Shown: positions 2,924 through 59,431 of the stretch, piece by piece
Position numbering within the stretch: position 1 is the first letter of the stretch
Layout: the number at the start of each line of letters is the position of its first letter
Origin: Octopus sinensis
Taxonomy: Eukaryota
Assembly: GCF_006345805.1 (NCBI RefSeq)
Contig: NC_043025.1
Coordinates: 3,472,001-3,536,000 of the forward strand
Direction: 5' to 3'
Length of the DNA: 64,000 bases
The notes under the pieces: model-generated
What the model was told of the DNA's origin: nothing
Database searches by the model: none
The model's input: the letters and a program-made list of their open reading frames with translations, nothing else
Program-made: the position numbers and the translations under genes

Positions 2924-29678
<26,755 letters not shown>

Positions 29679-32501: not shown

Positions 32502-33734
32502 CGAGGGACGTTCAATAAGTTATGCCCCTGACCCACTTGCATTTGTTTGATCTAGCTGAAATTTTGCATGTGCAATTATTCGTATCTCTATAGATTAAGT
32601 GGCAAATTACAGCTCTGAACTAATTATCAAGTGTGAAATGGAGCCTGTTGAGTGTCGAGCAGTGATCCGGTTTTTGTGAAAGGACGCACACCACGGGAGA
32701 CTTTTGATGAAATGAAAGTAACTCATGGTGATGATGCCCCATCATATGACCTTGTAAAACGCTGGCATCGTGAATTCAAATATGGTCGGAACTCCGTGGA
32801 AACAGCTCCCAGATCTGGTCGCCCCCTTCTGCCATTGATGAGGCATCTGTCCGTCAAGTTGAGGCTGCCATTTTGGAAGATCGACGCATAACAATTCGCC
32901 AAATAACCCATCAGGTCACAATTAGTACCGGGTCTGTGGAAACTATCATTCATGACCATTTACATATGCAAAAGGTGTCTGTCAGATGGATTTCCAGGTT
33001 GCTCACGCCTTTCCAGAAGCAAGAACGCGTCGAGTGCTCGAGGATGAATTTGGAGATGTGCCAAGAAGATGAGTCAAAATTTTTCAAAAGACTGATTACA
33101 CAGGATGAAACCTGGGTCCATCACGATAATCCAGAGACCAAAGCCCAGTCAATGCAGTGAAAGCACCGTGACTCACCCCCTCCAAAGAAGGCAAGGGCGC
33201 AACCCTCTGCTGGCAAGTTCATGCTCACAGTCTTCTGGGACCAGGACGGAGTAGTGATGACAGATTTCCTGGCAAAGGGTACCACAATTACAGGAGCCTA
33301 TTATGCTCCTATTTGAGGAAATTAAGAGAAGCTATCAAAATCAAGAGGCGGGGCAAGATCAGCAAAGGCATCCTCCTCCTGCAGGACAACGCTCCGGTCC
33401 ACAACTCGCGTGTCACCAGATCAGAAGCACAGGCGTGCGGCTATGAACTCCTACCTTGCACCCTCTGATTTTCACCTCTTCCCAGCCATGAAGTTGCTTT
33501 TGAAAGGGAAGCGTTTCCCAGATGATGCAGCCTTGATTTCTGAAGTCCCAGCGTGGTTGGAGAACCAGGCTGGGGTCTTCTAGAAAAACAGTCTCCAGAG
33601 CTGCATCAAACGATGGAAGAAATGCGTAACTCTGGGTGGTTCCTATGTAAAAAAAGACTAATAGCTGTGCCAAGTTTCGTTCCTCTTCTGCTATGGGAAG
33701 TGGATCAGGGGCATTACTTATTAAACGCCCATCG
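32502..33734 (+). mobile_element. Second mariner copy of the same family, defective
   Basis: TIR cgagggacgttcaataagt ... ttaaacgcccatcg with TA flanks; ITQDETWVHH followed by a premature TGA; small deletions. Confidence 0.93.
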
Positions 33735-34512: not shown

Positions 34513-34612
34513 NNNNNNNNNNNNNNNNNNNNNNNNNNNNNNNNNNNNNNNNNNNNNNNNNNNNNNNNNNNNNNNNNNNNNNNNNNNNNNNNNNNNNNNN
34601 NNNNNNNNNNNN
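34513..34612. other. Assembly gap (100 N)
   Basis: Exactly 100 N between an (ATT)n tract and a (TA)n tract, typical of an unsized scaffolding join. Confidence 0.99.
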
Positions 34613-38717: not shown

Positions 38718-41700
38718 ATGGAATTTGATGAGAATATAAGTAAACTTTTGCTTAGTGACACTCAATATATTAAAGGATATATTGAACAAAATTCACATAA
38801 AGTAAGTTGTTCTGTTGATTACCTTCTCAAAGTTGATTGTCATTTTATACACACCTGTGTTCCTAACTAACCACATATATTTGTCCATGATATTTCATTC
38901 CTTCCTTCACCCCCACCTTCTAATTCTCATTATCATTAGAGTTTATGAAAATTCAACCCAATCATGAAGCATGTCAGAGTTGATGGAATGTAAGTGAGAG
39001 AGAAGCCTGTCATCACACACTGCAACGGAGTATTCTGGCAGGAAATATTCAGTTAAGAGAAGAGAGACAGATGAAGCCAGTAGATGGATGGTGACTTTGT
39101 CATGACGTTCTCTTGCCATACACAGTTGAAAGTTCTTTTGGACGTCAGGAGTTATACCAATTCTTTGTTCTGTCAAATGTATGAAAACATCAAATCTTTG
39201 ATGAATCTTAGATCAATCCCCACTACACACTCTCTTCACTTTCTTTCCATAATCTAGACACAATCCTTTGCTACAACACCGAGAGGAAGAGATTATAAAT
39301 ATATGAGTGTGTGTATTATCGACACACTCACATGTATATGTATCTATCTATACCTGTGAGTGTACCTGTCTATAAATACAATACAAATCTCACCCCTAGA
39401 AACGCATCATTCCTCCTGTGTATGAGTCGAATACTTTATCTTCTGTTTCTGAGAATTGTGTAAGGCTTCTACCTTTCCTCTCCTAGCCACAAATTTTAGA
39501 TTCTTTATTGTTATTTCTTTTCAGATAAATCAACAAAATAGAGATGGTGACACACTACTACATCTGGCCTGTGCTCTCGGACACACAGAAATTGCTGAAC
39601 ATCTGTTGCAGCAGTCTGGCATTGATGTAAATGCTCTGAATAAAGATCAGAACACACCACTGCACCGGGCCTGTGTCATGGGACACACGAAGACAGTTAA
39701 ACATCTACTGCAGCACTCTGATATTGATGTAAATGCTAAGGATAGCGATCAGTGCACACCCCTACAGTTGGCCTTGTCACGGGAGACACGGAGACAGTTA
39801 AACATCTATTGCAGCACTCTAATATTGATGTAAATGCTAAGGATAGAATTCAGGACACACCCCTACACCGGGCATGTGACAAGGGACACGCAGAGACAGT
39901 TAAACATCTACTGAAGCACTCTGCTATTGATGTAAATGCTAAGGATAGCGGTCAGTACACACCACTACACCGGGCCTGTGTCAAGGGACACACGGAGACA
40001 GTTAAGCATCTACTGAAGCACTCTGCTATTGATGTAAATGCTAAGGATAGCGATCAGTGCACACGACTACACCGCGCCTGTGTCAAAGGACACACGGAGA
40101 CAGTTAAGCATCTACTGAAGCACTCTGCTATTGATGTAAATGCTAAGGATAGCGATCAGTGCACACCACTACACCGGGCCTGTGTCAAAGGACACACGGA
40201 GACAGTTAAGTATCTACTGCTGCACTCTGCTATTGAAGTAAATGCGAAGGATAGAATTCAGGACACACCACTACACCGGGCCTGTGTCGAGGGACACACG
40301 GAAACAACTAAACATCTACTGCAGCACTCTGCTATTGATGTAAATGCTAAGGATAGCGGTCAGTACACACCACTACACCGGGCCTGTGTCAAGGGACACA
40401 CGGAGACAGTTAAGCATCTACTGAAGCACTCTGCTATTGATGTAAATGCTAAGGATAGCGATCAGTGCACACCACTACACCGGGCCTGTGTCAAGGGACA
40501 CACGGAGACAGTTAAACATCTACTGCAGCACTCTGATATTGATGTAAATGCTAAGGATAGAATTCAGGACACACCACTACACCGGGCCTGTGTCACAGGA
40601 GACACGGAGACAGTTAAGCATCTACTGCAGCACTCTGATATTAATGTAAATGCTAAGGATAGAATTCAGGACACACCACTACACCGGGCCTGTGTCACAG
40701 GAGACACGGAGACAGTTAAGCATCTACTGCAGCACTCTGATATTAATGTAAATGCTAAGGATAGAATTCAGGACACACCACTACACCGGGCCTGTGTCAC
40801 GGGACACACGGAGACAGTTAAGCATCTACTGCAGCACTCTGATATTAATGTAAATGCTAAGGATAGAATTCAGGACACACCACTACACCGAGCCTGTGTC
40901 ACAGGAGACACGGAGACAGTTAAGCATCTACTGCAGCACTCTGATATTAATGTAAATGCTAAGGATAGAATTCAGTGCACACCACTACACCGGGCCTGTG
41001 TCAAGGGACACACGGAGACAGTTAAGCATCTACTGCAGCACTCTGATATTGATGTAAATGCGAAGGATAGCAATCTGTACACACCACTGTACCGGGCCTG
41101 TGTCGCGGGAAACACGGAGACAATTAAACATCTACTGAAGCACTCTGATATTGATGTAAATGCTAAGGATAGCAATCTGTACACACCACTACACCGGGCC
41201 TGTGTCACGGGAGACACGGAGACAGTTAAACATCTACTGCAGCACTCTGCTATTGATGTAAATGCTAAGGATAGCAATCAGTACACACCACTACACCGGG
41301 CCTGTGTCACGGGAGACACGGAGACAATTAAACATCTACTGCAGCACTCTGCTATTGATGTAAATGCTAAGGATAGCAATCTGTACACACCGCTATACGT
41401 GGCCTGCGTCACGGGAGACATTGAGACAATTAAACATCTACTGCAGCACTCTGATATTGATGTAAATGCTAAGGCTAGCGATCTGTACACACCACTACAC
41501 TGGGCCTGTGTCACGGGAGACACGGAGACAATTAAACATCTACTGAAGCACTCTGATATTGATGTAAATGCTAAGGAAAGCAATCAGTGCACACCACTAC
41601 ACCGGTCCTGTGTCGAGGGACACACAGATACAGTTAAACATCTACTGCAGCACTCTGATACTGACGTAAATGCTAAGGATAGCAATCAGGACACACCACT

Positions 41701-44700
41701 ACACCGGGCCTGTGACAAGGGACACGCGGAGACAGTTAAATATCTACTGCAGCACTCTGATATTGATGTAAGTGCTAGGGAAAGCAATCAGTATACATCA
41801 CTACACTGGGCCTGTGTCATGGGACACACGGAGACAGTTAAGCATTTACTGCAGCACTCTGATATTGATGTAAATGCTAAGGATAGCAATCTGTACACAC
41901 CACTATACCGGGCCTGTGTCGAGGGACACACGGAGACAGTTAAACATCTACTGCAGCACTCTGATATTGATGTAAATGCTAAGGATAGCAATAGGTGCCC
42001 ACCACTACACCGGGCCTGTGTCGAGGGAGACACGGAGACAGTTAAGCATTTACTGCAGCACTCTGATATTGATGTAAATGCTAAGAATAGCGATCTGTAC
42101 ACACCACTACACCGGGCCTGTGTCGAGGGACACACGGAGACAGTTAAGCATCTACTGCAGCACTCTGATATTGATGTAAATGCTAAGAATAGCGATCTGT
42201 ACACACCACTACACCGGGCCTGTGTCGAGGGTTACACGGAGACAGTTAAACATCTACTGCAGCACTCTGATATTGATGTAAATGCTAAGAATAGCGATCT
42301 GTACACACCACCACACCGGGCCTGTGTCGAGGGACACACGGAGACAGTTAAGCATCTACTGCAGCACTCTGATATTGATGTAAATGCTAAGAATAGCGAT
42401 CTGTACACACCACTACACCGGGCCTGTGTCGAGGGACACACGGAGACAGTTAAACATCTACTGCAGCACTCTGATATTGATGTAAATGCTAAGAATAGCG
42501 ATCTGTACACACCACTACACCGGGCCTGTGTCGAGGGACACACGGAGACAGTTAAGCATTTACTGCAGCACTCTGATATTGATGTAAATGCTATGGATAG
42601 CGGTCAGTTCACACCACTACACCGGGCCTGTGTCAAGGGACACACAGATACAGTTAAGCATTTACTGAAGCACCCTGCTATTGATGTAAATACTGAGGCT
42701 ATCAATGGGTACACACCACTCCACCAGGCCTGGGACAAGGGACACACGGATACAGTTAATCTCTTACTGCAGCATCCGAGCATTGATTACTATAAAAGAG
42801 ATACATCTGGTCACACACTACTACATCAGGCAGTTCTAAGGTGAGTCAGCATCATGGGTCATCCTTCTTCTTTCTCTCTCTTACTGTAATGACACTACCT
42901 TCTACTTTATTCAGTAATCACCGCCATAATTATTGTTATTGTTGTTCTTGTTATTGTTTTTATTGTTGTTGTCCCTGACTAGATCTTTCACTTCATCTCA
43001 TTCTCTATTACCACAACATCACATGTTCAAATCCTCTCTCTTACTTTTACTCCACATAAAACACCATACTTCTCCCTCCCTCCCTCCCTCCCTCCCCTCT
43101 CTTTTTCTCTCTCTCTTCTCTCTCTCTCTCTTCTCTCTCTTCATCTCTTGTAATGTCCCTCTTTCCTCTGACCCAGGGTTACGACCCTTTGTATCCTGAG
43201 TTCAAATCCTGCTGAGGTCAACTTGTTCGTTGTACCATAGAAAACATTGTGGTGTTTATTAAGATGTATATATATATATATGATTAATCAAGTGGTTAGA
43301 GTGTATATATCGATTATATTTATGTGTGTCTATATAATTATTGATGTAAACAGGTTGTATGTAGCTCATTAAATCTGTTTTCATAAATTAAAGACCTAAT
43401 AATTATTAATTATCTCAACCTCTATGATTTTCGCATTTTTTAATAATTTTCTTTCTTTTTGTATAACTTTCAGACAAAGCTATGATGTGGTTGGCATTGA
43501 TGCTATCCCAGGTTAGTTAATATATACATATTATATATACTCTCTTGTATTTTAATGATTTGGTCAATATTAACATCATCAAAGTACCAGTGAAATACTG
43601 GGGTAGATTTAATCAGCTGTACCCCACTAACCTTTAAATGACAGGTCTTGGGTCTGTGGAGGAACATGATAATAATAGTAATGGTAATGGTGTGGAGACA
43701 GTTCAGCTGACCACCACCACAGACAATACCATTTTTAATGTCTAGATTATACGAAATGTGTACAAGATTATTATGAAATTAATCCAAATATATCACAAAA
43801 ATTATCTTTTTATATATATATATATATATATATATACCGGAGTAAACACATAAATGTGAAACAAGGTGGAAAAAAGAGTACTCAAATACCAGTGGTAGAG
43901 TAATATGCTTTATTTTAAGCAGCAGAAAATTCAACAAAATCTGTTACTCTGAGTTTCTCCTTGCCGTTCATCAGACAGTTTTTGCTAGAATGGAACCGAT
44001 ATATCAATTCAGTCTAGACTCTTACAAACGCTACACCTTTTTAAAAAAATAGACTTGTTTGATTGGCCCTTTAGAAAAAAACGGTCAATCTTCGAGCGAT
44101 AAACAAAAGGTCAAAAATATATGTATATATATATAAAAATTTATAAAAAATTATAAAATTCGAGGAAAAAACCTTACATTGAATAAAATACATATTGACG
44201 TTAATGAAGAAAGTATAATTAAAGCATAGCAATTAAACCTATTATAAATATTACACTGCAATACATATTTATATTAAAGTGTACATATATATATATCAAC
44301 ATACACAGAAGGAAGCGTGCAGACGCCATACATATACAAACGTATAAATATAAATCTAAATATACACATAAATGCATTCGTACATATATGCACGCAATCC
44401 ATCTCGCACGCAAGTTAAAATCATCTATGTAGTGATTCTCATATACTGTGTAAGGGGGGGGGAACGAAAGAAAGGAAGAGAGAGAAAAAGGAACGAAGAA
44501 GGGGGAAGGACAAAAGAAAAAGGAGGGGTGGGGAAAAAACGAAATAAGAAAAAATTATGTATACAAGCTGTGTAACGGCATTCTTGGAGACAACTATACA
44601 AATACACAAGTTCGAATGGATACATACACATACAGTCGTGTATATGTGTGCTTAAGCACAAACATACGCTCACTTACACATACACAGATACGCATGCTTA

Positions 44701-45442
44701 CAAATACATATCCATGGTTATACACATACTTATATCAAAATTCTAATTTTTGACAACATTGCTTTTTTTAATATATATATACGAAAGGTATATAAAATAT
44801 ATATACGAAAGACATATAAAATATAACACCCTATTTTGGATCATCTATAAATAATCAAGGTAATAAATAATCAAGGTAATCCTATACAATACAATAACAT
44901 GAAATAAATAAAGTCGAATGTTTTTCCTAATGTATATGTAGAAACATAAGACTTTGCTATACGGATTAAAATCTGCATAGCTTGCAACAAAATCCATCGT
45001 AGCGCTCACACACCAGTTCAAGAGTCAAAATCAAAATTTCAAAATCAAAAAACAAAATATATACTCTATCCATATGGTATATTTATATTCGACATTTTAA
45101 ATTTAGCCGCGTGCCTACATAAGTTCATTAGCTCACTTCTTTGATTCAAAGAATTATTGTCTTTGAATAAAATGTACATTTTTTCTAATAAGCAAAGCTG
45201 GCACTTAAAATTATTTTTGTATGCTCCATGTCTGTATGGTGCCGCCCTGTCCAGAATGCTCCATGTCACGTTGAAAGGTGGGGTTTCCTTTTCTTTTAGT
45301 TCCCAGACATATTTTGCTAGGCTGGTCCTCTTCCTATTCTCTGGGTATTTAAATAAATTTTTATGAGAATACAATCTTGTTTTAAATGAATTTTCTGAAG
45401 CCCCTGTGTATGTCTTGTATTCTGATGAGCCTTCTACATATA

Positions 45443-45497
<55 letters not shown>

Positions 45498-47434
45498 GCG
45501 TGTATGTATGTATGTATGTATGTTGTATGTATGTATGTATGTATATATCACACACACATACACATGAATATATTTCTCCTCAAATCCATAAAATACACCA
45601 ACATAGGTAAATATATTACAACTGTCAACCTGTATGTTAAAACCATCTCATTATAGCTGAGACGTAATGCCATAGGATACCAAATCTAGTTGAAGAACAT
45701 GAACCAATGTTACTATCATGACAGAGCTTTCTACTGACATATCCATGCATAGTCTTCTGCTCATACAGGCTCATCCTTTCATCTGATGATACGCTGTGGT
45801 AGAGTCGTCCAAATTCTTTGGGAATGTATTCTTGGTTATCAGATAAAGAGTGTTGCTCACGGAGCTGCCTTCCTGTCATGCTCGAACCTCCTGCCTGGTA
45901 CACAGCCACTTCCCTCAGTTTCATTTCTTCCTTCAGCTGAGAAGTCTTTGTCATGCATGTTATTTGGTCACCCTGCTGGTGTTGGTGCCACGTAAAAGCA
46001 CTCGTGCTGGGGCGCCCAGTCCACACTTTTCCTTTTGTAGTTTACTTTGTACCTTCTCACATTATTCTGGCCTTACAAAACAAATCTCTTTGAAGTTATA
46101 CCACAAATACAGACATACATATGATGTGAGTTGTCTCACTTGCCTATGACTTACTTTCATGTGTTTTTAACACCACCAGACACATTGAGAATATATTCTC
46201 TCACACCTAAAAATGCAGCCAGCGAAGAACGTAACGACACACACTCCATGTTTGTGCGTTCGATTTTGTTTTGACATAAATTTTATGAACCCCTTATTAA
46301 TTTAGTAACATCAAAATTATACGCAAGTCCTAAAGGTCTTCTTTATTAAACTTAACCTGCTAATCTTGTGTTCGGTCCATTTGAACTCCCCTAAATTTAC
46401 TTCAGTGAGGGATAAACGTAGATTAGACTGAACCAATCTGTTTATTACATCTTAATAGATGTATCATGTCTCTTAAACACACTCATAGCAAGTTATAGAG
46501 GGACATTATGCAAGGCTAACTTCACTGACAAACATGAAATGTACATGATCGATTTGATCAAGTACCCAGTAGACGGCATTAATGACACATTGATAGCCAC
46601 CCTGATTTTCATGTAAATTTTCATTCTCTCTTTTTACTTCGACAAAGGATTCAGTGAAATTGAACATAACAAACTGGGATGGTATAACACCATTTCTTCA
46701 AGCTGTCTCTAGCGGCAACTTCAGAATAATGCAGGAATTCATTTCTAAAGGAACAGAGGTAAATGTGATCGATAATATCGGAAACAATTGTCTTCACCTT
46801 GCGGTGAGGAAAGAGGGGTTCCATTCTGAGGGTGAATCCTTAACTGTCTTGGATAAGGTAAGTTTTAAAATTATTTGTAAATATATATACGTGTGGATTT
46901 ATTTATAAGAGATAGAAAGAGAAACAGAGAGACATGATGGCAACCTTTAGAATGCAAGTGCCATGATAAATACATCCATTCCATTCTATGAGGGATTCCG
47001 AAAAAACAGCCCCCTGTCTTACTTCTTGTACACAACATTTATCCTCTGGCTTCTTGTGGACATGTCATAACAATATTGAATGTTAGAACACTAGAGAATG
47101 GATACATATAATATATAGTACATATATACATACGTACATACATACATACATACATACATACGTACATACATACATACATACATACATACATACATACATA
47201 CATACATACATACATACATACATACGTACATATATATATATATACATAGTGGCTGTGTGGAAAGTAGCTTGCTAACCAACCACATGGTTCCGGGTCCAGT
47301 CCCACTGCCTGGCATCTTGGGCAAGTGTTTCTGCTATAGCCCAGGGCCGACCAATGCCTTGTGAGTGGATTTGGTAGACGGAAACTGAAAGAAGCCTGTC
47401 GTATATATGTATATATATATATATGTGTGTGTGT

Positions 47435-47467
<33 letters not shown>

Positions 47468-47728
47468 ATTTGTCTGTCGGTGTTTGTACCCCTAGCATTG
47501 CTTGACAACCGATGCTGGTATGATTACGTCCCCGTCACTTAGCGGTTCGGCAAAAGGGACCGATAGAATAAGTACTGGGCTTACAAAGAAAAAGTCCAGG
47601 TGTCGATTTGCTCGACTAAAGGTGGTGCTCCAACATGGCCGCAGTCAAATGACTGAAACAAGTAAAAGAGTAAAAAGAGTAAACGAGTAATAGAGTATAT
47701 AATATATATACATATATAAGTATATATG

Positions 47729-47793
<65 letters not shown>

Positions 47794-48103
47794 TTCATTT
47801 ATTTATATTTATTAATTAATAAATTTTAGGGTAGCAAAAAATTCTAGAAAAATTCTCCGCTACCAGCGGTCAAGTGAGTAAAGAAAATAGTCAATAGACT
47901 ATGTAATATACATTCAAATATATAAGGGATGGCCATAATAGGACATCCGACTCACTAGAAAGAGCAGTTAAACTCCAAACCACTAATAGTTGTAATTCTG
48001 AAATGGAAAGAGAAATAAAAACGTTTACCCGATATTAGTGGTTTGGAGTTTAACTGCTCTTTCTAGTGAGTCGGATGTCCTAATATGGCCATCCCTTATA
48101 TGT

Positions 48104-48185
<82 letters not shown>

Positions 48186-48298
48186 ATATGGATCAAAATA
48201 GTTTAATGATCCAAACTGTTTTGATCCATACATGTAACTTCCAATGAATTGTTTGAGTGCCCCTCTCTCATTTGTTCACTTACTTTCACTCACATACA

Positions 48299-48366
<68 letters not shown>

Positions 48367-50263
48367 AAAATACAAATACATCAACATTTAACCATCAGTA
48401 GATCTAACAGTATTTACTGTCAAATTTTGCGCACTTGAAGCAACTCACTGATTCCCACATGAGTAACGGTCTCTACAGATTTGTGACTGTATTTCAGACA
48501 TTTGATGGTCATCTTTGTGTTGTGGTAATGTCCACTTTGATTCGAAGAAGCTATTCTGGCAGTCAAATGCCCTTCTCCCTCCATTACTGGAATTGTCTGT
48601 CAGACTAACAGTTTCCATAGTTTATCAAATAGAATGTGTTGGTGTCTTTCCTCAACCGTGACACCAATTCTTACTTCTTTTACTTCACCTTCATCATCCA
48701 AAGATGTTTCTTTATTAATTATGGAAACATCGTTGAGATATTTGGATAGGTCTGTGTGTTCTCTGTTATTTTTAACATTCATAGTTTCCATTATCTTTCT
48801 TGTATTTGACTTGATGCTATGATTTTGTTTATATTTGTGTACTATTGTACTTGTCCTTTTTATATTTCACCATTTGCAGTACTACAAGAAGCTCCAGCTT
48901 AGCAAAGGAGGCAAGCTTTCAAGCCTAGCAGTGGCTTGTTATCTGGCCGACAATGGAAGCAATTTTTACCACAGAAACGAACAGAATGTGATGCCGCTGG
49001 ATTTTATCGAGGATACAAATTTAAAAGAAAAAATTAAAAGACTTTTCCCACCTCCGGTGAAAGTATTTACTGAAAATGTCACGATTGACCAGTGAGTTTT
49101 CCCTTCTGTACATAATCATGTTCATATATTTTGCTTGGTTTTAATTCTCCCAATACGTTATTCTGTGTTTTGACCAAAGACCACACAACAACTGTAAGAA
49201 GAACAAGAAATAGAAAATACAGTCGAAGAACTCTATTTTGATTACATTCACATGATTGGTTGTGTTGATTGTTATACCACACTCTGCAATTTCTCTTTAA
49301 GTGTTAAAACCCGAGTAAGATGTTTCTTAGCTTAGTAAATAAGCACTTCCCCCGTACAAATAGATTCAACAAAATATTCAATAGTCACACTCTGCCTCAT
49401 TAGAAGCTAGACAGTATGCACATGCCTCAGTAGAAGGTTAATCTAACTAATTTTGATTATGATTCAATCTAATGAAGCAGAGAACATGTTTTTGGAGGAA
49501 CACATTTGATGTGGACAAGTTGTAGAGAAAATGTTTGTAAATCAATGATTTCTTGAGATGCACCAAAAACATTATTACATCATGCATGGCAGATAACATG
49601 GCCTTCTCTATAAATCTGGATTCAGCTTTAACTAGGGGCGGGTTTGGATGCAGAGCATTTGTGCAATTCTGTAAGGTGTTTTTGCTTGTATATATGTTAC
49701 GTCAGATATCCGCAATTTCCCTGTGAATGGGTTGTTTTTGTCTGACAGCCATGGTTGGAAAAGACACACAGGTCAGGAACTGAAAGGACCAGTTTGGTAG
49801 TTGGGCTGTTTTCTATATTCCATCCATCATAGAACCATTTTTTACCTTTTTCTTAGACTGAGATCATCAAGAGATTAGTTGTGCATTGAAGGCAGATAGA
49901 AAGCTGACATTTATTGCATTCAACTCATCAGTTTTCAAAACTATCCTCAGGTTTGGTATGTGCATATCAGACATGCTGCTTGGGGCATTGTTTTATTATA
50001 GAACTGTGGCCTGGTTTGTAACACATTGTTCACAAATACAAGAAGCTAGGGCAATTGTATCCTATCTGTCCATCCATACAATTCAAAAGGAATTGTCTAC
50101 GTTTAGAAAACTTGTTAAACAGATTAGGTTTTGTTCAGAAGAAATTGTCCCTCTACAAGAATTGAAGTATGTTTCTGGAATATATGTAGTTCGTTGTGTG
50201 TAAAGCAATTTTTTGTGATGTACCAGAGTCAAGACACATATTTAACAATATGTATGTTAATGC

Positions 50264-50297
<34 letters not shown>

Positions 50298-51898
50298 TGT
50301 GAGCGTAGAGTTCATATACACAGATATTTGCATTTACGTAATTGTTTAACGAAGATATTTTTATGTACTTTTACTGTGTCTCATAATATTCTGTACTCTA
50401 AACATGTACTCAATGCAATATTTGTTATAAATGAATATTATCAGTGATATGCCTCTATGTTTTGCTCAACAGATGTCTGCTGTGTAAATCTAGTGAAGCT
50501 ACAGTGACGTTTCAACCATGTGAGCACACTGTTACATGCAAAGATTGCTGTTCAGAAAATGAGCCTAAAAACTGTCCCGAGTGTCAACAAGTAATAGTTG
50601 ACAAACGTGGATTCGGTAAGAATAATATTTGATGATCTGTCTGTTTGTCTCATTGACTTTATGCTGTTGAATAATATACTTCATGTTACTATGAAGAGTC
50701 ACACCTGTCATAAATGTAGCAGATTTATGATAAAAGTGTCTTTTCTTTGTGATACTTTATCAATCACCACATCCACCAAACTTCGTCTTCGTCCAAATAC
50801 AAGGCTTGCTGCACTTCAAGAGGATACTGTTTGCAAGATAAGACTAATGAGTTATACTGCAAGTTAAACGGCGACTAACAGAAATATCAATAAAGCTGCC
50901 AGTTTCCCTCAGTAAATATCATGTTTTTACAGTCAATTACGAGTGATTAGAGGTGATTAATGATTTATCAGTATTTATCAGTATCTGATAAAGACAGCGT
51001 GAACATCAGAATGATTTTTGTAAAATAGGAGATTCAATGAGAAAATCTCAACTGAGGGATTAAAGAACAACATTAGAGGCTTTGATTGCTTAATTAATTG
51101 TTTTGCTTAATTAATTGTTTTGTGCTGCTGTGAATGTTTATTTGGTGATAGCTTCAACATATTTTGCAAAATTATCCTCCAGGAATTCTTCATGATTTAT
51201 CATGTTATGAAAATGCTAAACAATAATATTAGTCCACTGTTTGATCTGAGATGTCATCTCTTGTTAGGGTACGTACCCGGAATGTCTCAGGTTAAGACAT
51301 ATATTGTTGTGATAACTAAAAAAAATTAAATATTGATCGTTAAATTAATTTTATTGAACTGTGAACATATGTTTACATATAAACAAAGTATTTATGTTCA
51401 CGTATAAAATATACAAAGAATAATAAAATAGGAATTCCTAATGTGATTCGAACACACAACTCCTTGTTTGTAACCATATATAATCAACATTTGCTACATG
51501 GTTTGAATAACATTTGCATTCCATATTTATGATCATTCTTATGTAAATTAATAATCTTAAAAATATTACTGAAATCTCATCACATATCTTCTGAGTTTGG
51601 TAATATGGAGAAATGAGTTTAGACAAAATAGAGTTAATATTGTCTTTTGGAATAGGGAAATAAAATATGTTGTTGTTTAAGGGTAAACGAACGAGTACTG
51701 ACAAGGCTTTTGTTTGTTTTAAATTTTCTAAGAGTTTATTTTTGATGATGTTCAGCAAGACGTCATATTCTCACAGACTTAAGATGAAAAGTGTTCCAAA
51801 AGCAATTTCCATGTCTTTCTTTCTTTGATACTAAATCTTTTAATACATCCATTGTCCTTATCCAAGTACAAGAGTTTGGTTTGCTACTGAGATAAGCA

Positions 51899-51974
<76 letters not shown>

Positions 51975-54900
51975 CTTCAAAACAGATTTTGGCTACAAGA
52001 TTCAATACAATCAATGATATTGTCCTCATCATTAATCATGTTTTCCATACTCTCATGTTTTAGATGGGTGGTCACTGTCCTGGTCAGCTCTTATTCGTTG
52101 GCTGAAGAATATCTCTCACTTAAAACAGTCCAGCTTTTCACTGGTGGCATGCCCTTCCTAACACCAACCACATTTTTGAAAGGCCCTGGGAGCATTTTAC
52201 TGTGGCCCAAGCAGTAAAACCTTTGTCATATCCTCAAGAAGATTTCAATGTTGTATGACTTGATCTGGCAAACTCTCATGGGCCTCTACCAAAGAAATTG
52301 TTGATAGAAGCAGTGGACTTCTTTTATACACTGGAGAACGTTGATGATCTAATGAGGGGCTTTTGTAACAATTTCAAGATGTGGCAGACATCGGAATGTT
52401 TCACAACAGACTGACATCGTCTTGAAATTGGAATTGCTGTAGGTTGCCAAAAGTCAGTCATCTGGCTTGTGTCTGTTACTTATATTAGCAGATTTCCCAG
52501 AAGAAATTGCTCAAATGGAATCACCTAAAATGGCAATGGTGGATGATATTACAATTCTAACATGAAATGAAGATGATATGCAAATATTTGTGGGTAGACT
52601 GTATGGATCAATCACTTGTTCAAGGAGGAGGTTTAAGGCAATTAATTAATGCATTCATTTGTCAAAGGACATGAGAAGCAAGTGAAGTTAGGAGTAGCAG
52701 GAGAAACGATTCCAAAAGTTAAAGACAAACATTTAAGAAGCTTAGGAATATGCTAAGGACCATGGTACGAACTAAGAATGGGTTAAAAGCAATAGTTAAG
52801 TCAAAAGCGCTGGACAAATACAAGATCTGGTGCTTGCAGCCTGGTCTGTATCCTCATCTTGCTTATAATGTTTTGAGTCTCATTTCTTCTGAACCATTTC
52901 AAGTAGTTTCAGTGCAATAATGCGAGGGTGAACAGATATATGTAGTTGATGAGGTTTTGTGCATGTGAACTGGGGGTTTTAAGACACCTGTCATCGTCTT
53001 CTGCTTTACCTAGGTAGAATTATCAGAGAAGCTGACTAGCATTGTAATGTCTTCAGATATTTCTTGAGTCAGAGAACATTCTGGTGAAGTGTGATGTGGT
53101 CAGTTAAAATTAAAAATTGCAACCAACAACCTTCAACAAAGAGATCAGGTGTGTGTTTATCCTACTTGAAGTAGTGTGTCATGTGTTTGTGGTAAGATCT
53201 TTGCAGAACCAACTTGGTTGACATTGGAATTAAGCAGGAAGAAGAATGCTGGTTAGTGAAGTCTAGAGACGTGAGGACAAGGCCATTGATTTGGCACAGA
53301 TATAAGAGAAGAAAGACAATACAAAAAAGAGAACATGACATCAAGTGATAATTAAATGTGATAATTACTAGATTATTTGAGAACGGAGGATATCTTAATC
53401 GGGAAATGAAGTTTAGGCCATTCTGGTGTGGACCTTAACATTGTGTCATTTGATGAGGTCACAATGCATAGTATAAAAATGCTGTCCAACACCATAGTGA
53501 CCACCAATTGACCGTTGATGATGTGAATAACAAGGACAAAATATAGACCATTGATAGGGAAAGAGAAATTAAAGTTTGATGTGTAAAATTTGGAAATATC
53601 TTATTTTCAGAGTCTGTAAAACTGGAGGCGATGCATCTCAATATAGTGGCAACGAAGTTAGGGAAGGACTGGCAATTTGTTGGTGAGCATTTAATACCTA
53701 ATTGATTTTTATAAATTTTGCCTTCACTTGAGCTTCTGTTTGTTAGAATGATTGAGAACAGTTTCCATTCTTTTAAATTCCAATTGAAAGTTTAACTGCA
53801 AAGTAATTCTAATGAAGAAACTTCCTAAAATCGAGGTTTGCATGGTTGGTAAAATGGATTAATTTGAAGCCACAAAAGATTTAATATTCTCTTTTAAAAT
53901 AGGGATCTAAAATATGTTGTTGTTTATGTACAAACAGGTGAGTTAATGTCAATGGTTTCGTTTCTTTAGATTTTTACTATGTTCACTGGTAGGTTGTTGT
54001 TGTCATGGTTGTGGTAGATATCTGCCTTAATCTTCAGAAGAAAAGTGTTCCGGGTGCGGCATCATTCTTTCTCTTAGGAGAAGAGGATCTCATTATCAAA
54101 TGCAACGTCGTTAACCCAAGAGTGTGCCTTTTGTGCGACATGTTGTAGCCCCTCCCCTGACCAGTTTTTTTTTACTTTTGTTATAGCCCCAGGTCAGCCT
54201 ATAGTCGTGTCTCTAAATTGACAGGCCCCATTTTTGATTGTTTTTGCGTGTGGATTGAACTCCGCGCTGTAAGTTAATGAAACAAAACACAAATTATAAA
54301 ACAAAACACAAATTATAAAACTATTACCTTGTTTTAAATTTTGAGGCTTAAAATTTGGCAAAAAGGTTTTGTAAGGGATTATACTGCTATCCATGTATAA
54401 GAAGCTCCCATACTTTTTTAACCTAATTTTTAACAAAAATTGGTTCCTTCACATGTTAAAATATGGTAAACTTAACTTGATTTCATTTCTTATTTGAAAT
54501 TCTTTCCTCACCCTTTACAATACAAATATCATTTAGAAATCATGAACATCACAATATTCCATTTCTCTTTGTGTGAATGGGTAAGAACAGAAAGTATGAT
54601 TTATACAAACTTCCCATTATTTATAGCAATGTCTTGTACCTGCCCATGGCACCTGTGTACATCTAAGTAGACTGTCCTATAGTGAGATGTATTTACCTGG
54701 GGTATTGAGCAGTTGACCCCTGACATAGGATGTCAACATAATATCCTCTCAGTCAGCTGATAGAATTGATTTATCTAAATTTAGAGAAGACATCATCTAT
54801 GACAATGTCGATTTCTTATATCCCTGGAAGTCATACAAAATGTACCGGTCATATACTGGGGTAAAATAAACTCCCTAATAATATTCATTATCATCATCTT

Positions 54901-57008
54901 AAGTCCATCTCTCCACACTTGTATGTGTTAGATGACTTCTCCCACAAATGCTGTGAACCTTTGTTACGTTTAACCTCTTGTTTTCTTCCATTTGGATATT
55001 CTGGCACTTCTTTATCCAATTTTCATCTTCCATACTCTTCCCATGACTGTACCATTTCTTCTCTTGTGCCCTATCTCTGATTCTACTGAGACCCAGTTTT
55101 TCTTCCAGCTCATCTTTTCTCCAGCATTCCAATACACTAACATTACACTTCTCGTGAAGTATTCTCACCTCATTTCTTGCCAGTTTTCATACATCCTCCA
55201 CATTCAATGCATCGCTGCACTTTACAAATATACATCATACAATCTACCCTTCATTCAGAAAGAGAATTCTTTATTTGTCAGTAGGGATAACAGCTCTATG
55301 TACATTTTGCCACCTCATTCTGTTCTCTAATCACCTTACTTTCAGAGTAGTCTCTCCCACTCCTAATTATGTCACCTAGGTAACAGAAACTCTCGTCCAT
55401 GCCTTTCACAGTTATTCTTACAACAAACTATTCCTGTATATCTACTACTCACAAACTCCTTCCTCTCCATCAACTTGCCTCTGACCCCACATCACCCATT
55501 GTGTGCATTGAATACACAGTATAGAATCCCTATTAACCCCTTCTACCTGCTTATGAAATATGGTAACTTCACTAGATGATGTAGAGGTTGGTAGATGCAG
55601 TGATTCCTTCAGGCCCTAAGCGTCTGCATGTGTATGGTGTAGATGGTGATGACTCCCGTCTTCTTTCCTACAAAACTAAAACTTTTCTCTTTGCTAGCTT
55701 TACTCTAAAACCTGTCCATTATCGGATTCTCTCTAAATTGTGGCATTGGTCCAGTAAAAGAAATCCTTATTACGAGTCATGAACCCAAAATGGTTAAGTT
55801 GGTGTCTTTTAAAATATGTGTTGTGTACTTGATAGCATTATATTTTGTATTTTGTGTAATTAAGGTCATTCTGGTGTCATGCTTACTTGTATTTTAATTG
55901 GTCCAGGTGTACCTAATATTACTGGTATTGATAGTTAAAGTTATTTCTAAATGTTGATATGTTTTAATTGTTAATTAGTGAGTGTAGGAGAAGTAGGAGA
56001 GACATCACTGATGACTATTCCAGGTATTGATCAGGTGATGATTCAAAGCAGCTGAAATGGGATTCCTTTAAATGGTCTCTGTTACTGAAAAGGAGGCGCA
56101 CGGCTCAGAGATTTGGGAGTCTCTCCAGGTTGAGCCACTATTTCCCTGCATTGAGGGGTCACAATTCCAGTTCTATGGACATGAGATTAGACTGTCACAA
56201 GAAAGAATTGCAAGACGGATTCTTTAAGCTGAGCCACTTGACCGGAGACCAAGGAATAGACCAAGAATGAGATTGTTGGATAATATCTAAAGTCTTAATT
56301 GGTCAAGCTTGAGAATCCAACTGGACAGTAAGATGAAAGTAACTTTGAAGGGGGTTCCCTGGCGACTCTACCCCCACAACCCTTTTATGAATAGAGGGTA
56401 GAGAATATGAATAGATGGATGAGATAATGTGACTCTTTGGGTGATATTAATTGATTCTTTAGGGTCTCATACGCTATTACCCACACAACATTTTCCCTGC
56501 CATCTCTTTACCAGAAATTCTCTCAAATATAATTTTCAATACTTTTTAAAACATTTCTCCATTTCAATCCTTTATTTCAATTTCTTTGTTATCTTTTAAT
56601 CATCATTCCTAGAAATAGAGAACAATGTCTAATATTTTTCATTTTTCTTACCTATTTTTTAATTTCTCTCCCGATATAATATTGTTGTTATAGTTATTAC
56701 AATCTGCAATATGCATCTCTTATTTTATTCTTAATGTTGTTGCAATTATTTATTATTTTTGTATGTTTTGCAGGAAGGGAATTAGGAATTAAACAAATTG
56801 AGCTGGACTTTATCATCATGACTATCCAAAAATACTAAAACAGATTTTCCAGATGCTCCACTATTGGTTCAAGAGATGTGATCGAAAGAAACACGAAACA
56901 CTCAGAAATGCTCTTAAGTCACGTCATTGTAAAGAGGCATTAACATATCTAGACTCAGTGAATTCCATGGAAATGTTTAGTCTCATGTCAACCAACAGTG
57001 ATCTATGA
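38718..57008 (+). CDS. Ankyrin-array / RING-HC / death-domain protein (Mind bomb-related), ~1,430 aa; exons 38718-38801, 39525-42840, 43474-43511, 46648-46857, 48880-49091, 50473-50615, 53611-53682, 56774-57008
   Basis: ATG at 38718 (MEFDENISK..), GT-AG introns with matching phases, TGA ending at 57008, AATAAA at 57192. The reconstruction requires correcting 1-nt indels at ~39775, ~43497 and ~56812. Confidence 0.85.
39525..42840 (+). repeat. Coding tandem array: 32 complete 102-bp (34-aa) ankyrin repeats in one exon
   Basis: Consensus TPLHRACVxGHTETVKHLLQHSDIDVNAKDSxxx. Period measured as 102 bp (39839 to 39941). The 1030-aa ORF equals 35 + 29x34 + 9 residues. Confidence 0.97.
43935..43984 (-). 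ncRNA. Type I hammerhead motif with canonical core and weak stem II, intronic
   Basis: caaaa-a-ctgt-CTGATGA-acggcaagga-GAAAC-tcaga-GTA-acag-a-ttttg. It lies downstream, on the same strand, of the PLE fragment at 45 kb; a 3'-half copy is at ~36110. Confidence 0.5.
45066..45430 (-). mobile_element. Penelope-like GIY-YIG C-terminal fragment (second family)
   Basis: TYTGASENSFKTRLYSH..TSLAKYVWELKE..WSIL..CQLCLLEK..LNQRSELMNLCRH. Confidence 0.85.
47912..48109. repeat. Hairpin: 77-bp arms (47912-47988 / 48033-48109), 44-bp spacer
   Basis: ataagggatggccataataggacatccgactcactagaaag... and its reverse complement, 2 mismatches; resembles the end of the 35-kb palindrome. Confidence 0.85.
50473..50615 (+). 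CDS. RING-HC (C3HC4) exon of the ankyrin gene
   Basis: CLLC-x10-PCEH-x3-CKDC-x8-CPEC. Confidence 0.92.
52250..52870 (+). mobile_element. Degenerate R2/NeSL-like RT fragment (intronic)
   Basis: HRLEIGIAVGCQKSVI, AMVDDITIL, KYKIWCLQPGLYP. Confidence 0.6.
53611..57008 (+). CDS. Death domain (two exons: 53611-53682, 56774-57008)
   Basis: LNIVATKLGKDWQFVGRELGIKQIELDF(I)HHDYPKILKQIFQMLHYWFKR..ETLRNALKSRHCKEALTYL matches the death-domain pattern (LGxDW..LGRxLG...I...YP....Q...ML..W). Confidence 0.85.
54890..55560 (-). mobile_element. RTE-like LINE 3' remnant
   Basis: ELEEKLGLSRIRDRAQEKKWYSHGKSMEDENWIKKC resembles the RTE C-terminus; short (tga)n tail. Confidence 0.6.
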
Positions 57009-59431
57009 TCAAACGCATTCCAGCCATGGCCATCCTGTCTTTATCCTTCATGTAGATGAGCCAGAAAAACATTGTCCAGTGTATTCTTCTTTAAGGTGAC
57101 AAAGTGTGAATTGTGGTGGATTTGACTACTACTTCTAGCAGATTATCTACCACAAAGAAATCCCTTTATTGGAGGTGATTATACACTTAAAAATAAATCC
57201 AAAATTTTAAAATCCAAAAATAAAACTGTGTTAAAAACTCTTGTCTTGTTGGAAATAATGACACAACATTTGTTTATTTTAATTCCATGTGACTGTAGAA
57301 AAGCCACAATGACCCCTTCTTTCCAAATAACATCGGATAATGGAAATGAACCCTTTTTTCCCTACAATATTTCATACAACTGGACTTTTATTGCATTTCA
57401 ATTTGCAATTAAATTCCAAGACTTTAACACCATCAACTCAGATGACATCCTAAGTAAAACACACGAAACCTCTGAGAAGGACTTCTTTTTGTCAATAAAA
57501 TCATGCGAGAGGAAACTCTCCTTTGCAAAATTAAGTGAAATGAAACAGGGTTTGGAATTGTAGTTTTCTGTGATAAGAGTTGTTCTGAAATTAAATATTT
57601 AAAAAATATTCAAATTAGATCAAAACTCTTTATTCTGAAATTAATATGTAATTAAAAATTATTTATGTTAAAACAAATTATTTTGTATCAAATTTCTTAT
57701 AAACTTATTCTAACTAAAGTGATAACAGTAACTTATTAATTAAAAGGTAAGGTCGGTTTTGGCAAGGTTCTTACAGCTGGATGTCCTTCACAGCACCAAC
57801 CACTCAGCAGAGTGAACTCAGTGCTTTTTATGTGGCACAAGCACAGGTGAGGTCAGTTTTGGCAAGGTTTTTACAGCTGGATACCCTTCCGAACACCAAC
57901 CACTTTACGGTGTGGACTTGGTGATTTTTTAAGTGGCACCTGCATTGAGAGGGTGACTAAGTACATGCATGACAAAAACATCTAAAAGGAGAGGAGGTGA
58001 TGATGAAAAGGTTATAATGAGACAGATATAGGCATCTTACTGAAGAGGAAGTACAAGGTTACCCGGCCGGAGAGAGAAAGTTCAAGAATGAAGACAGAAA
58101 CAGGTGTGCTATCACAAAGAAAATACACAGTTGCTCAACCTTAGCGAAGTGCAGGAGAGAGAGAGACAGAGAGAGAAAGAGAAAGAAAGAGAGAGAGTGT
58201 GCGGGGTAGGGTGGGGAGACAGCAGGGTGGAGATGATGGCAAAATGCTGGTCATGCTCACAAGGAACGGAGTTCAGAGTATAAATGAGATGGTTGAGTGA
58301 AGGAAGAGAGAGAAATATAAACAGCAGCAAGTGCCAGGGCATAGTCTTGAGGTTCAAATGCCATAATATAAGTGACCGGATATTGTGAAGGAAGAGCAAG
58401 TAAGTGGTGAAAGACCTGGGTATATATAAAGTAAGAAGGATCTACTGGATGGCAACGATGCATAGAAACACGGGGGTGAGGAGAGAACTGGGGAGTGAGG
58501 GCTAAGCAAGGAGAGAGAGAGAGCTAGGCAAGGGGAGAGATAGAGAGAGAGAGAGAGCTTGGCAAGGAGAGAGAGAGAGAGAGAGCTAGGCATAGTGAAT
58601 GAAGGAGGAAATGCTAGAAAGAGATGTAAATTGGTTTGTTGAGGTTGGGTGAAGGACACGTTTTCTTGTTACGTGTGGAACACCCAGGTCGGAGGCTGGC
58701 AGATGGCAATAATAGAGACATGGCATGTGGGTAGAACGCACAGGTCAGGGTCAAGCAGAGGGCAATGGTAAAGTGGCACCAGGTCAAGGGGACAAGATTG
58801 GGGAGTGGGAGGTAAGCATAGAGCATGAAGTAGAAATGTGAGGAATGATGTAGAGATGAGTTTGGTTCGTTGTGGCAGAAGTGTGAGAAGTTCTCTACAC
58901 AACGCTTCCAGAACTCAGTTTTGCTGATGTGGGTGGGTCTTCTCAAGGAATTCATATCGCCAGACATCTTGGTCCATTGTCATTTCCTCTGTGAGGGCCA
59001 GCTTCCTGAGATCAGTCCTAATCACTTGATGCCGTGTCTTCCTGGGTCTCCCTCTTCCACAGGTACCATCCACTTTCAATGATCAGCTCTTCTTTATGCA
59101 ACTGTCCTCATTCATACGCATCACATGTCCATTATAAGCAATGTAAATATTCTACAACAGATGATAATAATAATAATAATGAAATCAATGTATACAGTGC
59201 TCAGGTGCACCACAACTTGTCAAAAGTGCGTATAAAGCGTATAAAACATATCCTACTGATAGCAAGAGGTATTTTTCTGCGACATCCTTATAAGCACGTC
59301 AACACTTTCTACAGGGAGAAATTCCTATGTCAGAGAAATTCTGGAACTTCTGGCACTCTCATAACCTCGTTTGGTCCTCACAACTTGAATTTATTCCTAA
59401 GACCAACTGCTGCAACCAATTCATTTAATTC

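Follow-up and report, generated by a model that had tools for sequence, protein, structure and literature searches.

An Octopus family of ankyrin–RING–death-domain genes with a Mind bomb-like ankyrin end, and a long-array copy that is probably no longer functional

Does a single octopus gene join a long ankyrin array, a RING finger and a death domain in one chain, and is that chain a remodelled Mind bomb ligase? The question is raised by a gene on the forward strand of a 64-kb stretch of the Octopus sinensis genome (C29:3472001-3536000, hereafter the window; coordinates are those of the window unless another location is named). An initial annotation, made from the letters alone, had proposed about 35 ankyrin repeats, a terminal segment derived from Mind bomb, one RING-HC finger and a C-terminal death domain. 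The explanation that we favour overall, with somewhat better than even confidence, is that the gene belongs to a Mind bomb-like family, seen here only in Octopus, and that the copy in the window is a recently expanded mosaic that is probably dead.

We reconstructed the gene in eight exons, from an ATG at 38718 to a TGA at 57006-57008, both where the initial annotation had placed them, with AG/GT sites and compatible phases at every junction. Exons 4-8, spliced likewise in the nearest paralogue (C29:1.68 Mb), give XP_036370842.1 residue for residue. Every domain listed in the initial annotation is present, including an N-terminus of 28 aa, the 28 codons of exon 1. The frame, however, is not continuous. 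Three 1-nt lesions interrupt it, so that the ATG gives a 130-aa product as assembled; bridging them yields about 1,436 aa (a 1,437-letter read-through that includes three X placeholders). As assembled, the gene does not encode the one continuous chain proposed; the initial annotation had read through lesions 1 and 3 and missed a micro-exon together with the lesion that it carries. The exons and lesions are as follows, with a slash marking an exon boundary at splice sites.

38718-38801, forward strand: exon 1, ATG and 28 codons (MEFDENISKLLLSDTQYIKGYIEQNSHK); donor AAA/GTAAGT, phase 0
39525-42840, forward strand: exon 2, ankyrin mega-exon, 3,316 nt; acceptor TTTCAG/, donor CTAAG/GTGAGT, phase 2
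39774-39775, forward strand: lesion 1, G missing in ankyrin unit 3; the frame runs to TAA at 39831-39833
43474-43511, forward strand: exon 3, micro-exon (R)QSYDVV[A]LMLSQ, completing ankyrin unit 33; phase 2 to phase 0
43491/43492, forward strand: lesion 2, extra T in the micro-exon
46648-46857, forward strand: exon 4, 70 codons (DSVKLNITNWDGITPFLQAVSSGNFRIMQEF...LTVLDK), ankyrin units 34 and 35a; acceptor ACAAAG/, donor AAG/GTAAGT
48880-49091, forward strand: exon 5, Mind bomb-type terminal ankyrin segment (YYKKLQLSKGGKLSSLAVACYLADNGSNFYHRNEQNVMPLDFIEDTNLKEKI...) and a 12-codon extension; donor CA/GTGAGT
50473-50615, forward strand: exon 6, RING finger, C-x2-C-x11-C-x-H-x3-C-x2-C-x8-C-x2-C, then a conserved ...RGF
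53611-53682, forward strand: exon 7, first part of the death domain (SVKLEAMHLNIVATKLGKDWQFV); 72 nt, phase 1 to phase 1
56774-57008, forward strand: exon 8, remainder of the death domain and stop TGA
After 56818, forward strand: lesion 3, A missing in exon 8 (ATCATC-ATGAC, where the paralogue has ATCATCAATGAC in the DNA alignment)

The family's ankyrin domain begins with a conserved N-terminal cap, which exon 1 encodes; the exon shares 96% identity with the C29:9.36 Mb paralogue, and its motif also opens XP_029653061.1 and XP_014782788.1. The micro-exon, found with family peptides and flanked by TTTCAG/ and /GTTAGT, has 38 nt in the window and, by alignment, 37 nt in paralogues p8.80 and p9.35; intact family proteins read ...AVLKQHYDVVALMLAQ... 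at this position. The acceptor of exon 4 is kept in six of six close paralogues, and the RefSeq model of the paralogue starts within this exon. A first model, in which the ankyrin exon was joined to an internal acceptor at 46713 (TCTAG/C), was rejected because its AG occurs only in the window and one paralogue and because the micro-exon restores a canonical junction to the conserved acceptor at 46648. At the other end of this region, exon 5 of most paralogues closes with ...PPQ or ...PPL and a donor CA/GTAAGT or CT/GTAAGT; in the window (49040-49091) and in the 1.68-Mb and 1.71-Mb paralogues this donor has been lost, and the exon extends 12 codons to a new donor of the same phase, CA/GTGAGT.

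The Mind bomb-like end, the RING and the death domain

The segment that the initial annotation had quoted as Mind bomb-like, SSLAVACYLADNG..., is present in exon 5. Searched alone, it has a sole significant PDB match, residues 340-380 of MIB1 (8v0e_A, E 0.002), which form the last ankyrin repeat of that protein. A profile of 11 paralogous exons retrieves the same structure (residues 340-381) at E 4.3e-13, with the best generic ankyrin protein far behind at 2e-7. In the reverse direction, a 41-aa segment of human MIB1 finds the octopus MIB1 orthologue first (C13:62.00 Mb, 88% identity), followed by no fewer than 73 exons of the family (38-50% identity), with the probable MIB2 orthologue at only 40%. 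A further link to MIB1 comes from a sister member with two RINGs, XP_029652975.1, whose second, C-terminal finger matches MIB1 RING3 (8v0d_B) at E 3e-13, the best IAP standing at 8e-8. RING3 is the MIB1 finger required for activity.

The RING-HC assignment of exon 6 holds: the exon passes Pfam zf-C3HC4_3 (36.1 bits against a cut-off of 27, E 5.8e-9) and has eight of eight zinc ligands in C3HC4 spacing. Its nearest solved relatives are the RINGs of cIAP2, XIAP and MUL1, and it belongs to the general IAP/MIB class. The F-x-P-C-x-H-x3-C spacing is that of MIB RING1/2 and IAP fingers, not of the RING3 type, which we found only in sister members such as XP_029652975.1. By our own count the exon 6 finger shares 8 of 22 residues with each of MIB RING1 and RING2, a tie that assigns it to neither; in PCGH, Glu takes the place of the usual Gly, and its last Cys is followed by Gln.

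The N-terminal module that defines Mind bomb ligases is missing. Pfam found no MIB/HERC2, ZZ, ZU5 or UPA match in the N- and C-terminal parts of the gene, nor in six family proteins scanned whole (matches at E 0.001 or better). A genome-wide search with PF06701 (MIB/HERC2) found exons only on C26, C13, C20 and C10, and none on C29; these exons are confined to the two true MIB loci and to HERC2-like loci. The cap profile, the reverse search, the RING3-like finger of the sister member and the restriction of MIB/HERC2 exons to true MIB and HERC2-like loci together support the reading of the family as a putative Mind bomb derivative without the N-terminal substrate module. To this extent the proposed derivation from Mind bomb is borne out, by the terminal ankyrin segment and by the sister finger, but the gene is not a MIB member.

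Likeness and difference can be set out side by side. As in MIB1 and MIB2, the ankyrin domain ends in the same special last repeat (...IACFLAANGADL..RNKKGQSPLDL..DPNL), followed by a short linker and a zf-C3HC4_3 RING, and sister members of the family end in a MIB1 RING3-like finger. Unlike MIB1 and MIB2, the window gene is without the MIB/HERC2-ZZ-MIB/HERC2 or REP substrate-binding region, has one RING, not of the RING3 type, together with a C-terminal death domain, and holds at least 33 repeats where MIB has about nine; its paralogues number about 100, as against two MIB genes.

Automatic names given to relatives, among them 'MIB2-like', 'MIB1-like' and 'ankyrin-3-like', would suggest that the gene is instead the octopus orthologue of MIB1 or MIB2, an ANKDD1 protein or an ankyrin. 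We give this identity practically no credence, and for MIB1/2 it is refuted: the true MIB1 orthologue lies elsewhere, on C13, the probable MIB2 orthologue is on C26 (20.27-20.31 Mb), the gene's terminal parts have none of the MIB/HERC2, ZZ, ZU5 or UPA matches, and ANKDD1, to our knowledge, has no RING. The true MIB1 orthologue extends over 200 kb or more (C13:61.80-62.01 Mb), and all of its exons that we saw are intact: MIB/HERC2 at 61,802,419 and 61,835,221, the last ankyrin at 61,999,912, RING1 at 62,005,921 and the first half of RING2 near 62,007,105.

The proposed death domain (53611-53682 and 56774-57008) scores 27.2-34.1 bits with Pfam PF00531, above the cut-off of 22.6, although only when lesion 3 is read through; the domain claimed is thus present, in a frame that does not reach its end. 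All six paralogue death domains that we examined match PF00531 individually. A profile of these six finds the RIPK1 death domain best (6ac5_A, E 3e-12, profile positions 2-83), in a match that includes an I.HD....LKE..YQML.KW core, followed by PIDD (2e-9), ankyrin-3 (5e-8), FADD (7e-7) and then Fas, CRADD, TRADD and TNFR1. On contig C10645, a paralogue only 45% identical has cap, RING and death-domain exons all intact, so the pairing of RING and death domain is a conserved trait of the family and no accident of this locus.

Two further observations concern the region around this domain. At the C29:1.68 Mb locus, RefSeq isoform X1 includes exon 7, X2 skips it and X3 ends after it (the isoforms there are XP_036370843.1, XP_036370844.1 and XP_036370842.1). 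Because exon 7 is phase-symmetric, its skipping deletes the first death-domain helices in frame, and regulated making of forms without a death domain is possible. In CAI9744105.1 and XP_036355694.1, two to five tandem motifs of about 17 aa with a CxxC pair (ECP[KR]C[KR]EK.VKTV.ESF) stand between RING and death domain; the window's subfamily has none.

The architecture borrows from several known systems. The RIPK1 death domain is the best solved match, ahead of those of PIDD1, ankyrin-3 and FADD; unlike RIPK1, the octopus family has no attached kinase or RHIM, and helical assembly is for the family a prediction. ANKDD1A/B, the ankyrins, DAPK1 and NF-kB p100/p105 also carry ankyrin repeats upstream of a C-terminal death domain, the ankyrin death domains being matched in our searches and the rest being general background. 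We know of none among these proteins with a RING in between, and of none with a MIB-type cap. The inhibitor of apoptosis proteins (IAPs; mammalian cIAP1/2 with the order BIR-UBA-CARD-RING, and the oyster BIR-DD-RING types of PMC8917759, where DD is a death domain) share the RING class and the presence of a death fold and a RING in one chain. Unlike them, the family has no BIR, its RING precedes the death domain, whereas in IAPs the death domain or CARD precedes the RING, and its RING is not C-terminal. Pfam scans of gene parts and family proteins found no BIR domain, which sets the family apart from the IAPs. Molluscan IAPs have undergone their own lineage-specific expansion, which is smallest in Octopus among the molluscs compared (PMC8917759).

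The family in Octopus

How widely does this architecture occur? We searched the whole assembly (2,719,151,902 bases in 13,516 contigs). A six-frame search with the C-terminal 270 aa as query returned no fewer than 144 exon matches, spread over dozens of loci; the 41-aa human MIB1 piece retrieved at least 75 cap exons, and the death-domain exon of a paralogue at least 132 of its kind. These counts are lower bounds, and some of the matches may be assembly duplicates. The architecture recurs at about 100 loci in the O. sinensis genome. Matched exon by exon, five paralogous loci share the N-cap, micro-exon, cap, RING and two death-domain exons with the window gene, in the same phases. By these shared exons the window copy belongs to an Octopus 'MIB2-like' ankyrin–RING–death-domain family, but as assembled it has no open frame.

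Among 1.84 billion representative proteins, exon 5 found 49 matches. We checked the records of 30 of these, and 27 are from O. sinensis, O. vulgaris or O. bimaculoides; the other three comprise one generic plant ankyrin protein and two unnamed ENA records. The records checked thus place the family, as far as they go, only in Octopus. Its members carry automatic names such as 'E3 ubiquitin-protein ligase MIB2-like', 'MIB1-like', 'ankyrin-3-like', 'ankyrin repeat protein RF_0381', '26S proteasome non-ATPase regulatory subunit 10' and 'Death domain-containing protein'. Pfam applied to ten of the matches gave ankyrin repeats with zf-C3HC4_3 and Death in four (RefSeq/ENA) and ankyrin repeats with two RINGs in two.

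The predicted Octopus proteins XP_036370842.1, XP_036355694.1, XP_029653061.1, XP_014782788.1 and CAI9744105.1 share N-cap motif, cap, RING and death-domain exons with the window gene. They differ from it in having open frames, 185-653 aa (usually 250-650 aa) and roughly 5-12 ankyrin repeats, where the window copy has at least 33 units and three lesions. A collection of 5.8 billion protein clusters held no family protein of 771 aa or more, and we found no database model that matches the window copy. Homologue searches with the C-terminal region alone gave no match, and a whole-length search returned only generic ankyrin proteins at 23-46% identity. A literature search found no description of the family. 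The earlier statement that no characterised protein has this architecture therefore stands for the literature searched, but the architecture is not unique, with its roughly 100 loci and with RefSeq/UniProt entries for three Octopus species. It is a lineage-specific, uncharacterised variant of known modules, already in the databases under misleading automatic names.

Within the family, the window copy is a mosaic, its 5′ part closest to C29:9.35 Mb and its 3′ part to C29:1.68 Mb. Positions 45872-47160 are 96.4% identical to the 9.35-Mb paralogue, and positions 48177-57200 are 93.8% identical to the 1.68-Mb paralogue, the locus of XP_036370842.1 (94% identical in exon 5). A mosaic of this kind fits a birth-and-death family with frequent recombination.

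Other parts of the genome carry traces of the same sequences. At C1:41735553-41762722 and C1:107080390-107101656 we saw tandem, intronless and stop-ridden copies of the C-terminal half, with cap, RING and death domain in one stretch, which look like processed pseudogenes amplified in satellite fashion; the period, measured only in the 41.74-Mb array, is about 3.57 kb. On C29, matches at 1.59-1.62 Mb (forward strand) and 8.80-8.82 Mb (reverse strand) have identical statistics in inverted order, as do C29:1611633 and C29:9340090. Each pair reflects one of two things, a very recent segmental duplication in inverted orientation or a stretch that the assembly contains twice, and the family counts are inflated accordingly.

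The long array and the broken frame of the window copy

Exon 2 consists of 33 tandem ankyrin units of 34 aa or 102 nt (Tandem Repeats Finder: period 102, 31.6 copies, 90% matches), and the Pfam Ank families match it with E values down to 1e-50. Three more ankyrin-like units lie in exons 3-5, some 36 altogether, in good agreement with the 35 or so first proposed, 33 of them in one 3.3-kb exon. Between neighbouring units the DNA identity ranges from 71 to 100%, and the units group into ordered blocks, RIQD, SNLY and SDLY, an arrangement that marks recent unequal crossing-over or gene conversion. The ankyrin exon would have grown to 33 units by recent unequal crossing-over of the 102-nt unit. Long arrays occur at three C29 loci, with 33 units in the window, about 27 at 8.81 Mb and about 26 at 9.36 Mb, and each is frameshifted within the array.

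It is improbable, in our assessment, that the count of 33 is itself an artefact, an array expanded or collapsed by the assembly from a shorter or longer one. Units of up to 100% identity would lend themselves to this, a sister locus has a 100-N gap in place of its array, and the other long loci stop at about 26-27 units. The differences between units (90% mean match) and their ordered blocks, however, suffice to anchor long reads, and long arrays stand at three separate loci. Assembly gaps of 100 N are present at window 34513-34612 and at C29:1595812-1595911. The latter lies about 2 kb upstream of a paralogue's exon 4, where the ankyrin mega-exon is expected, so the array of that paralogue is probably unassembled.

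The three frame lesions bear on whether the gene still works. At lesion 1, paralogues p9.35 and p8.80, both long, have GGCCTGTG at the same unit in the alignment, and the lesion adjoins His-to-Gln and Arg-to-Leu changes in the TPLHRA motif. Lesions 2 and 3 sit in about 1 kb of non-repetitive exons, and beyond lesion 3 the incoming frame ends at an in-frame TAA (56836-56838). None of the 75 cap exons found in the assembly has a stop, and nearly all of some 115 death-domain exons outside the processed C1 arrays are likewise free of them; the local rate of indel errors therefore seems low. The window's death-domain exon is among the few in the genome with internal stops. Compared with the 94%-identical paralogue, exon 8 has six indels in 235 nt, where about 0.8 would be expected from 31 gap openings over the 9.1-kb duplicated block. 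We consider it reasonably probable that the copy is a real pseudogene or null allele, most likely a young one.

Several observations weigh against this reading and favour the opposite one, that the gene is intact and functional, encoding about 1,436 aa with some 36 ankyrin repeats, RING and death domain, and that its lesions are indel errors of long-read assembly. All three lesions are single-base indels, the typical residual error of such assemblies, and we take the O. sinensis assembly to be PacBio-built. Once they are bridged, the 1,437 codons contain no nonsense substitution, where by our own estimate neutral evolution would have produced about three at the observed divergence of about 3.5%. 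The two other long-array paralogues each have one frameshift in the repeat exon, unique to the locus, as random assembly errors would be; frameshifts in all long arrays could reflect a systematic assembly problem, and 102-nt units of up to 100% identity defeat short-read polishing. The RING exon looks constrained, with one non-synonymous and three synonymous changes relative to paralogues, although these counts are tiny, and the new donor of exon 5 preserves phase. Two of the lesions, however, fall outside the array, in exon types that are almost always intact elsewhere in the assembly; exon 8 has its six indels; and the annotated sets of three Octopus species contain no family protein that reaches 771 aa. 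An intact gene is for us a possibility, yet an unlikely one. Much less plausible still is a short product made by skipping exons 2 and 3, which would carry the N-cap, about three ankyrin repeats, the RING and a truncated death domain. The phases would allow it, exon 1 ending and exon 4 starting in phase 0, and the nearest paralogue (C29:1.68 Mb) has no ankyrin mega-exon and annotated products of 211-272 aa, one of which skips exon 7; the death-domain lesion would nevertheless persist, and exon 2 has strong splice sites. For the window copy we thus continue to prefer a young pseudogene or null allele.

The surroundings of the gene contain little else. In the 38 kb upstream we saw only repeat debris and microsatellites, and no other host gene. 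A mariner-type transposase fragment lies at 16711-17298 on the forward strand (Pfam Transposase_1, E 3.9e-26), and a second mariner-type fragment that shares a motif with it lies at 32774-33160, also forward, with no Pfam match. Three open reading frames, 9023-9862 (reverse strand), 9675-10106 (forward) and 45066-45647 (reverse), share another motif, ...KYVG/YTG..E..FK.R...H...F...W.L....W.I......Y......C.LC..E...I, have no Pfam match and probably represent an unclassified repeat family; one copy of this repeat is within intron 3 of the gene.

Proposed mechanism and what the family may mean

How might such a protein work in the members that are intact? In the explanation that we favour, the family has kept the MIB-type ankyrin end and one IAP/MIB-class RING and has lost the MIB/HERC2-ZZ substrate module, and in most members a RIPK1-like death domain occupies the site at which some sisters have a RING3-like finger. 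The ankyrin groove or solenoid would bind a protein target, the death domain would self-associate or join helical death-domain signalling complexes, and the RINGs clustered in this way would then ubiquitylate the bound partners. IAP-class RINGs act as dimers. Two features of the retained RING counsel caution: it is not of the RING3 type on which MIB1 activity depends, and it has the Glu and Gln residues noted above. For intact members, such a mechanism would be in keeping with a part in innate immunity or in cell death, and the sensor, ligase and adaptor role put forward in the initial annotation would be a candidate function of this kind; the copy in the window is itself probably not functional.

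A broader reading, which we regard as tentative and rather doubtful, is that the roughly 100 members form an octopus-specific repertoire for intracellular recognition, in which ankyrin arrays would be the variable binding module, wired to a RING and a RIPK1/IMD-type death domain. The arrays would evolve fast, growing and shrinking by unequal crossing-over; the repertoire would be a functional analogue of the NLR or TRIM expansions of other animals; and the 33-unit locus would be a recent, perhaps still segregating, product of birth and death. The hints in this direction are weak. Amino-acid variation among units is highest at positions 1-4, 13, 15, 24, 27 and 34, most of which correspond, by comparison with designed ankyrin proteins, to the beta-turn and first-helix positions of the binding groove. 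The ratio of non-synonymous to synonymous differences among units (pN/pS) is 2.3 at positions 34, 1-4, 13 and 15 and 0.66 elsewhere, a contrast that is suggestive only, because the choice of columns was in part guided by the data themselves and the pairs of units lack independence. The corresponding ratio between paralogues (dN/dS) is about 3 in ankyrin exon 4 and 0.08 in the RING exon, on tiny counts and without statistical significance, and 0.7-1.7 overall, on counts too small to separate neutrality from mixed selection.

The family, rather than the window locus, merits attention. Labels such as 'MIB2-like' and 'ankyrin-3-like' conceal a distinct family, and its long-array members are now unannotated or broken. 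Innate immunity and cell-death signalling are poorly mapped in cephalopods, and about 100 loci that combine ankyrin repeats and a RING with a RIPK1-like death domain would rank among the larger lineage-specific expansions in this genome. The family illustrates how a developmental ligase, Mind bomb of the Notch pathway, can lose its substrate module and acquire a death domain in a new architecture, and it offers a concrete candidate for the way in which octopuses couple recognition, ubiquitylation and death-fold signalling.

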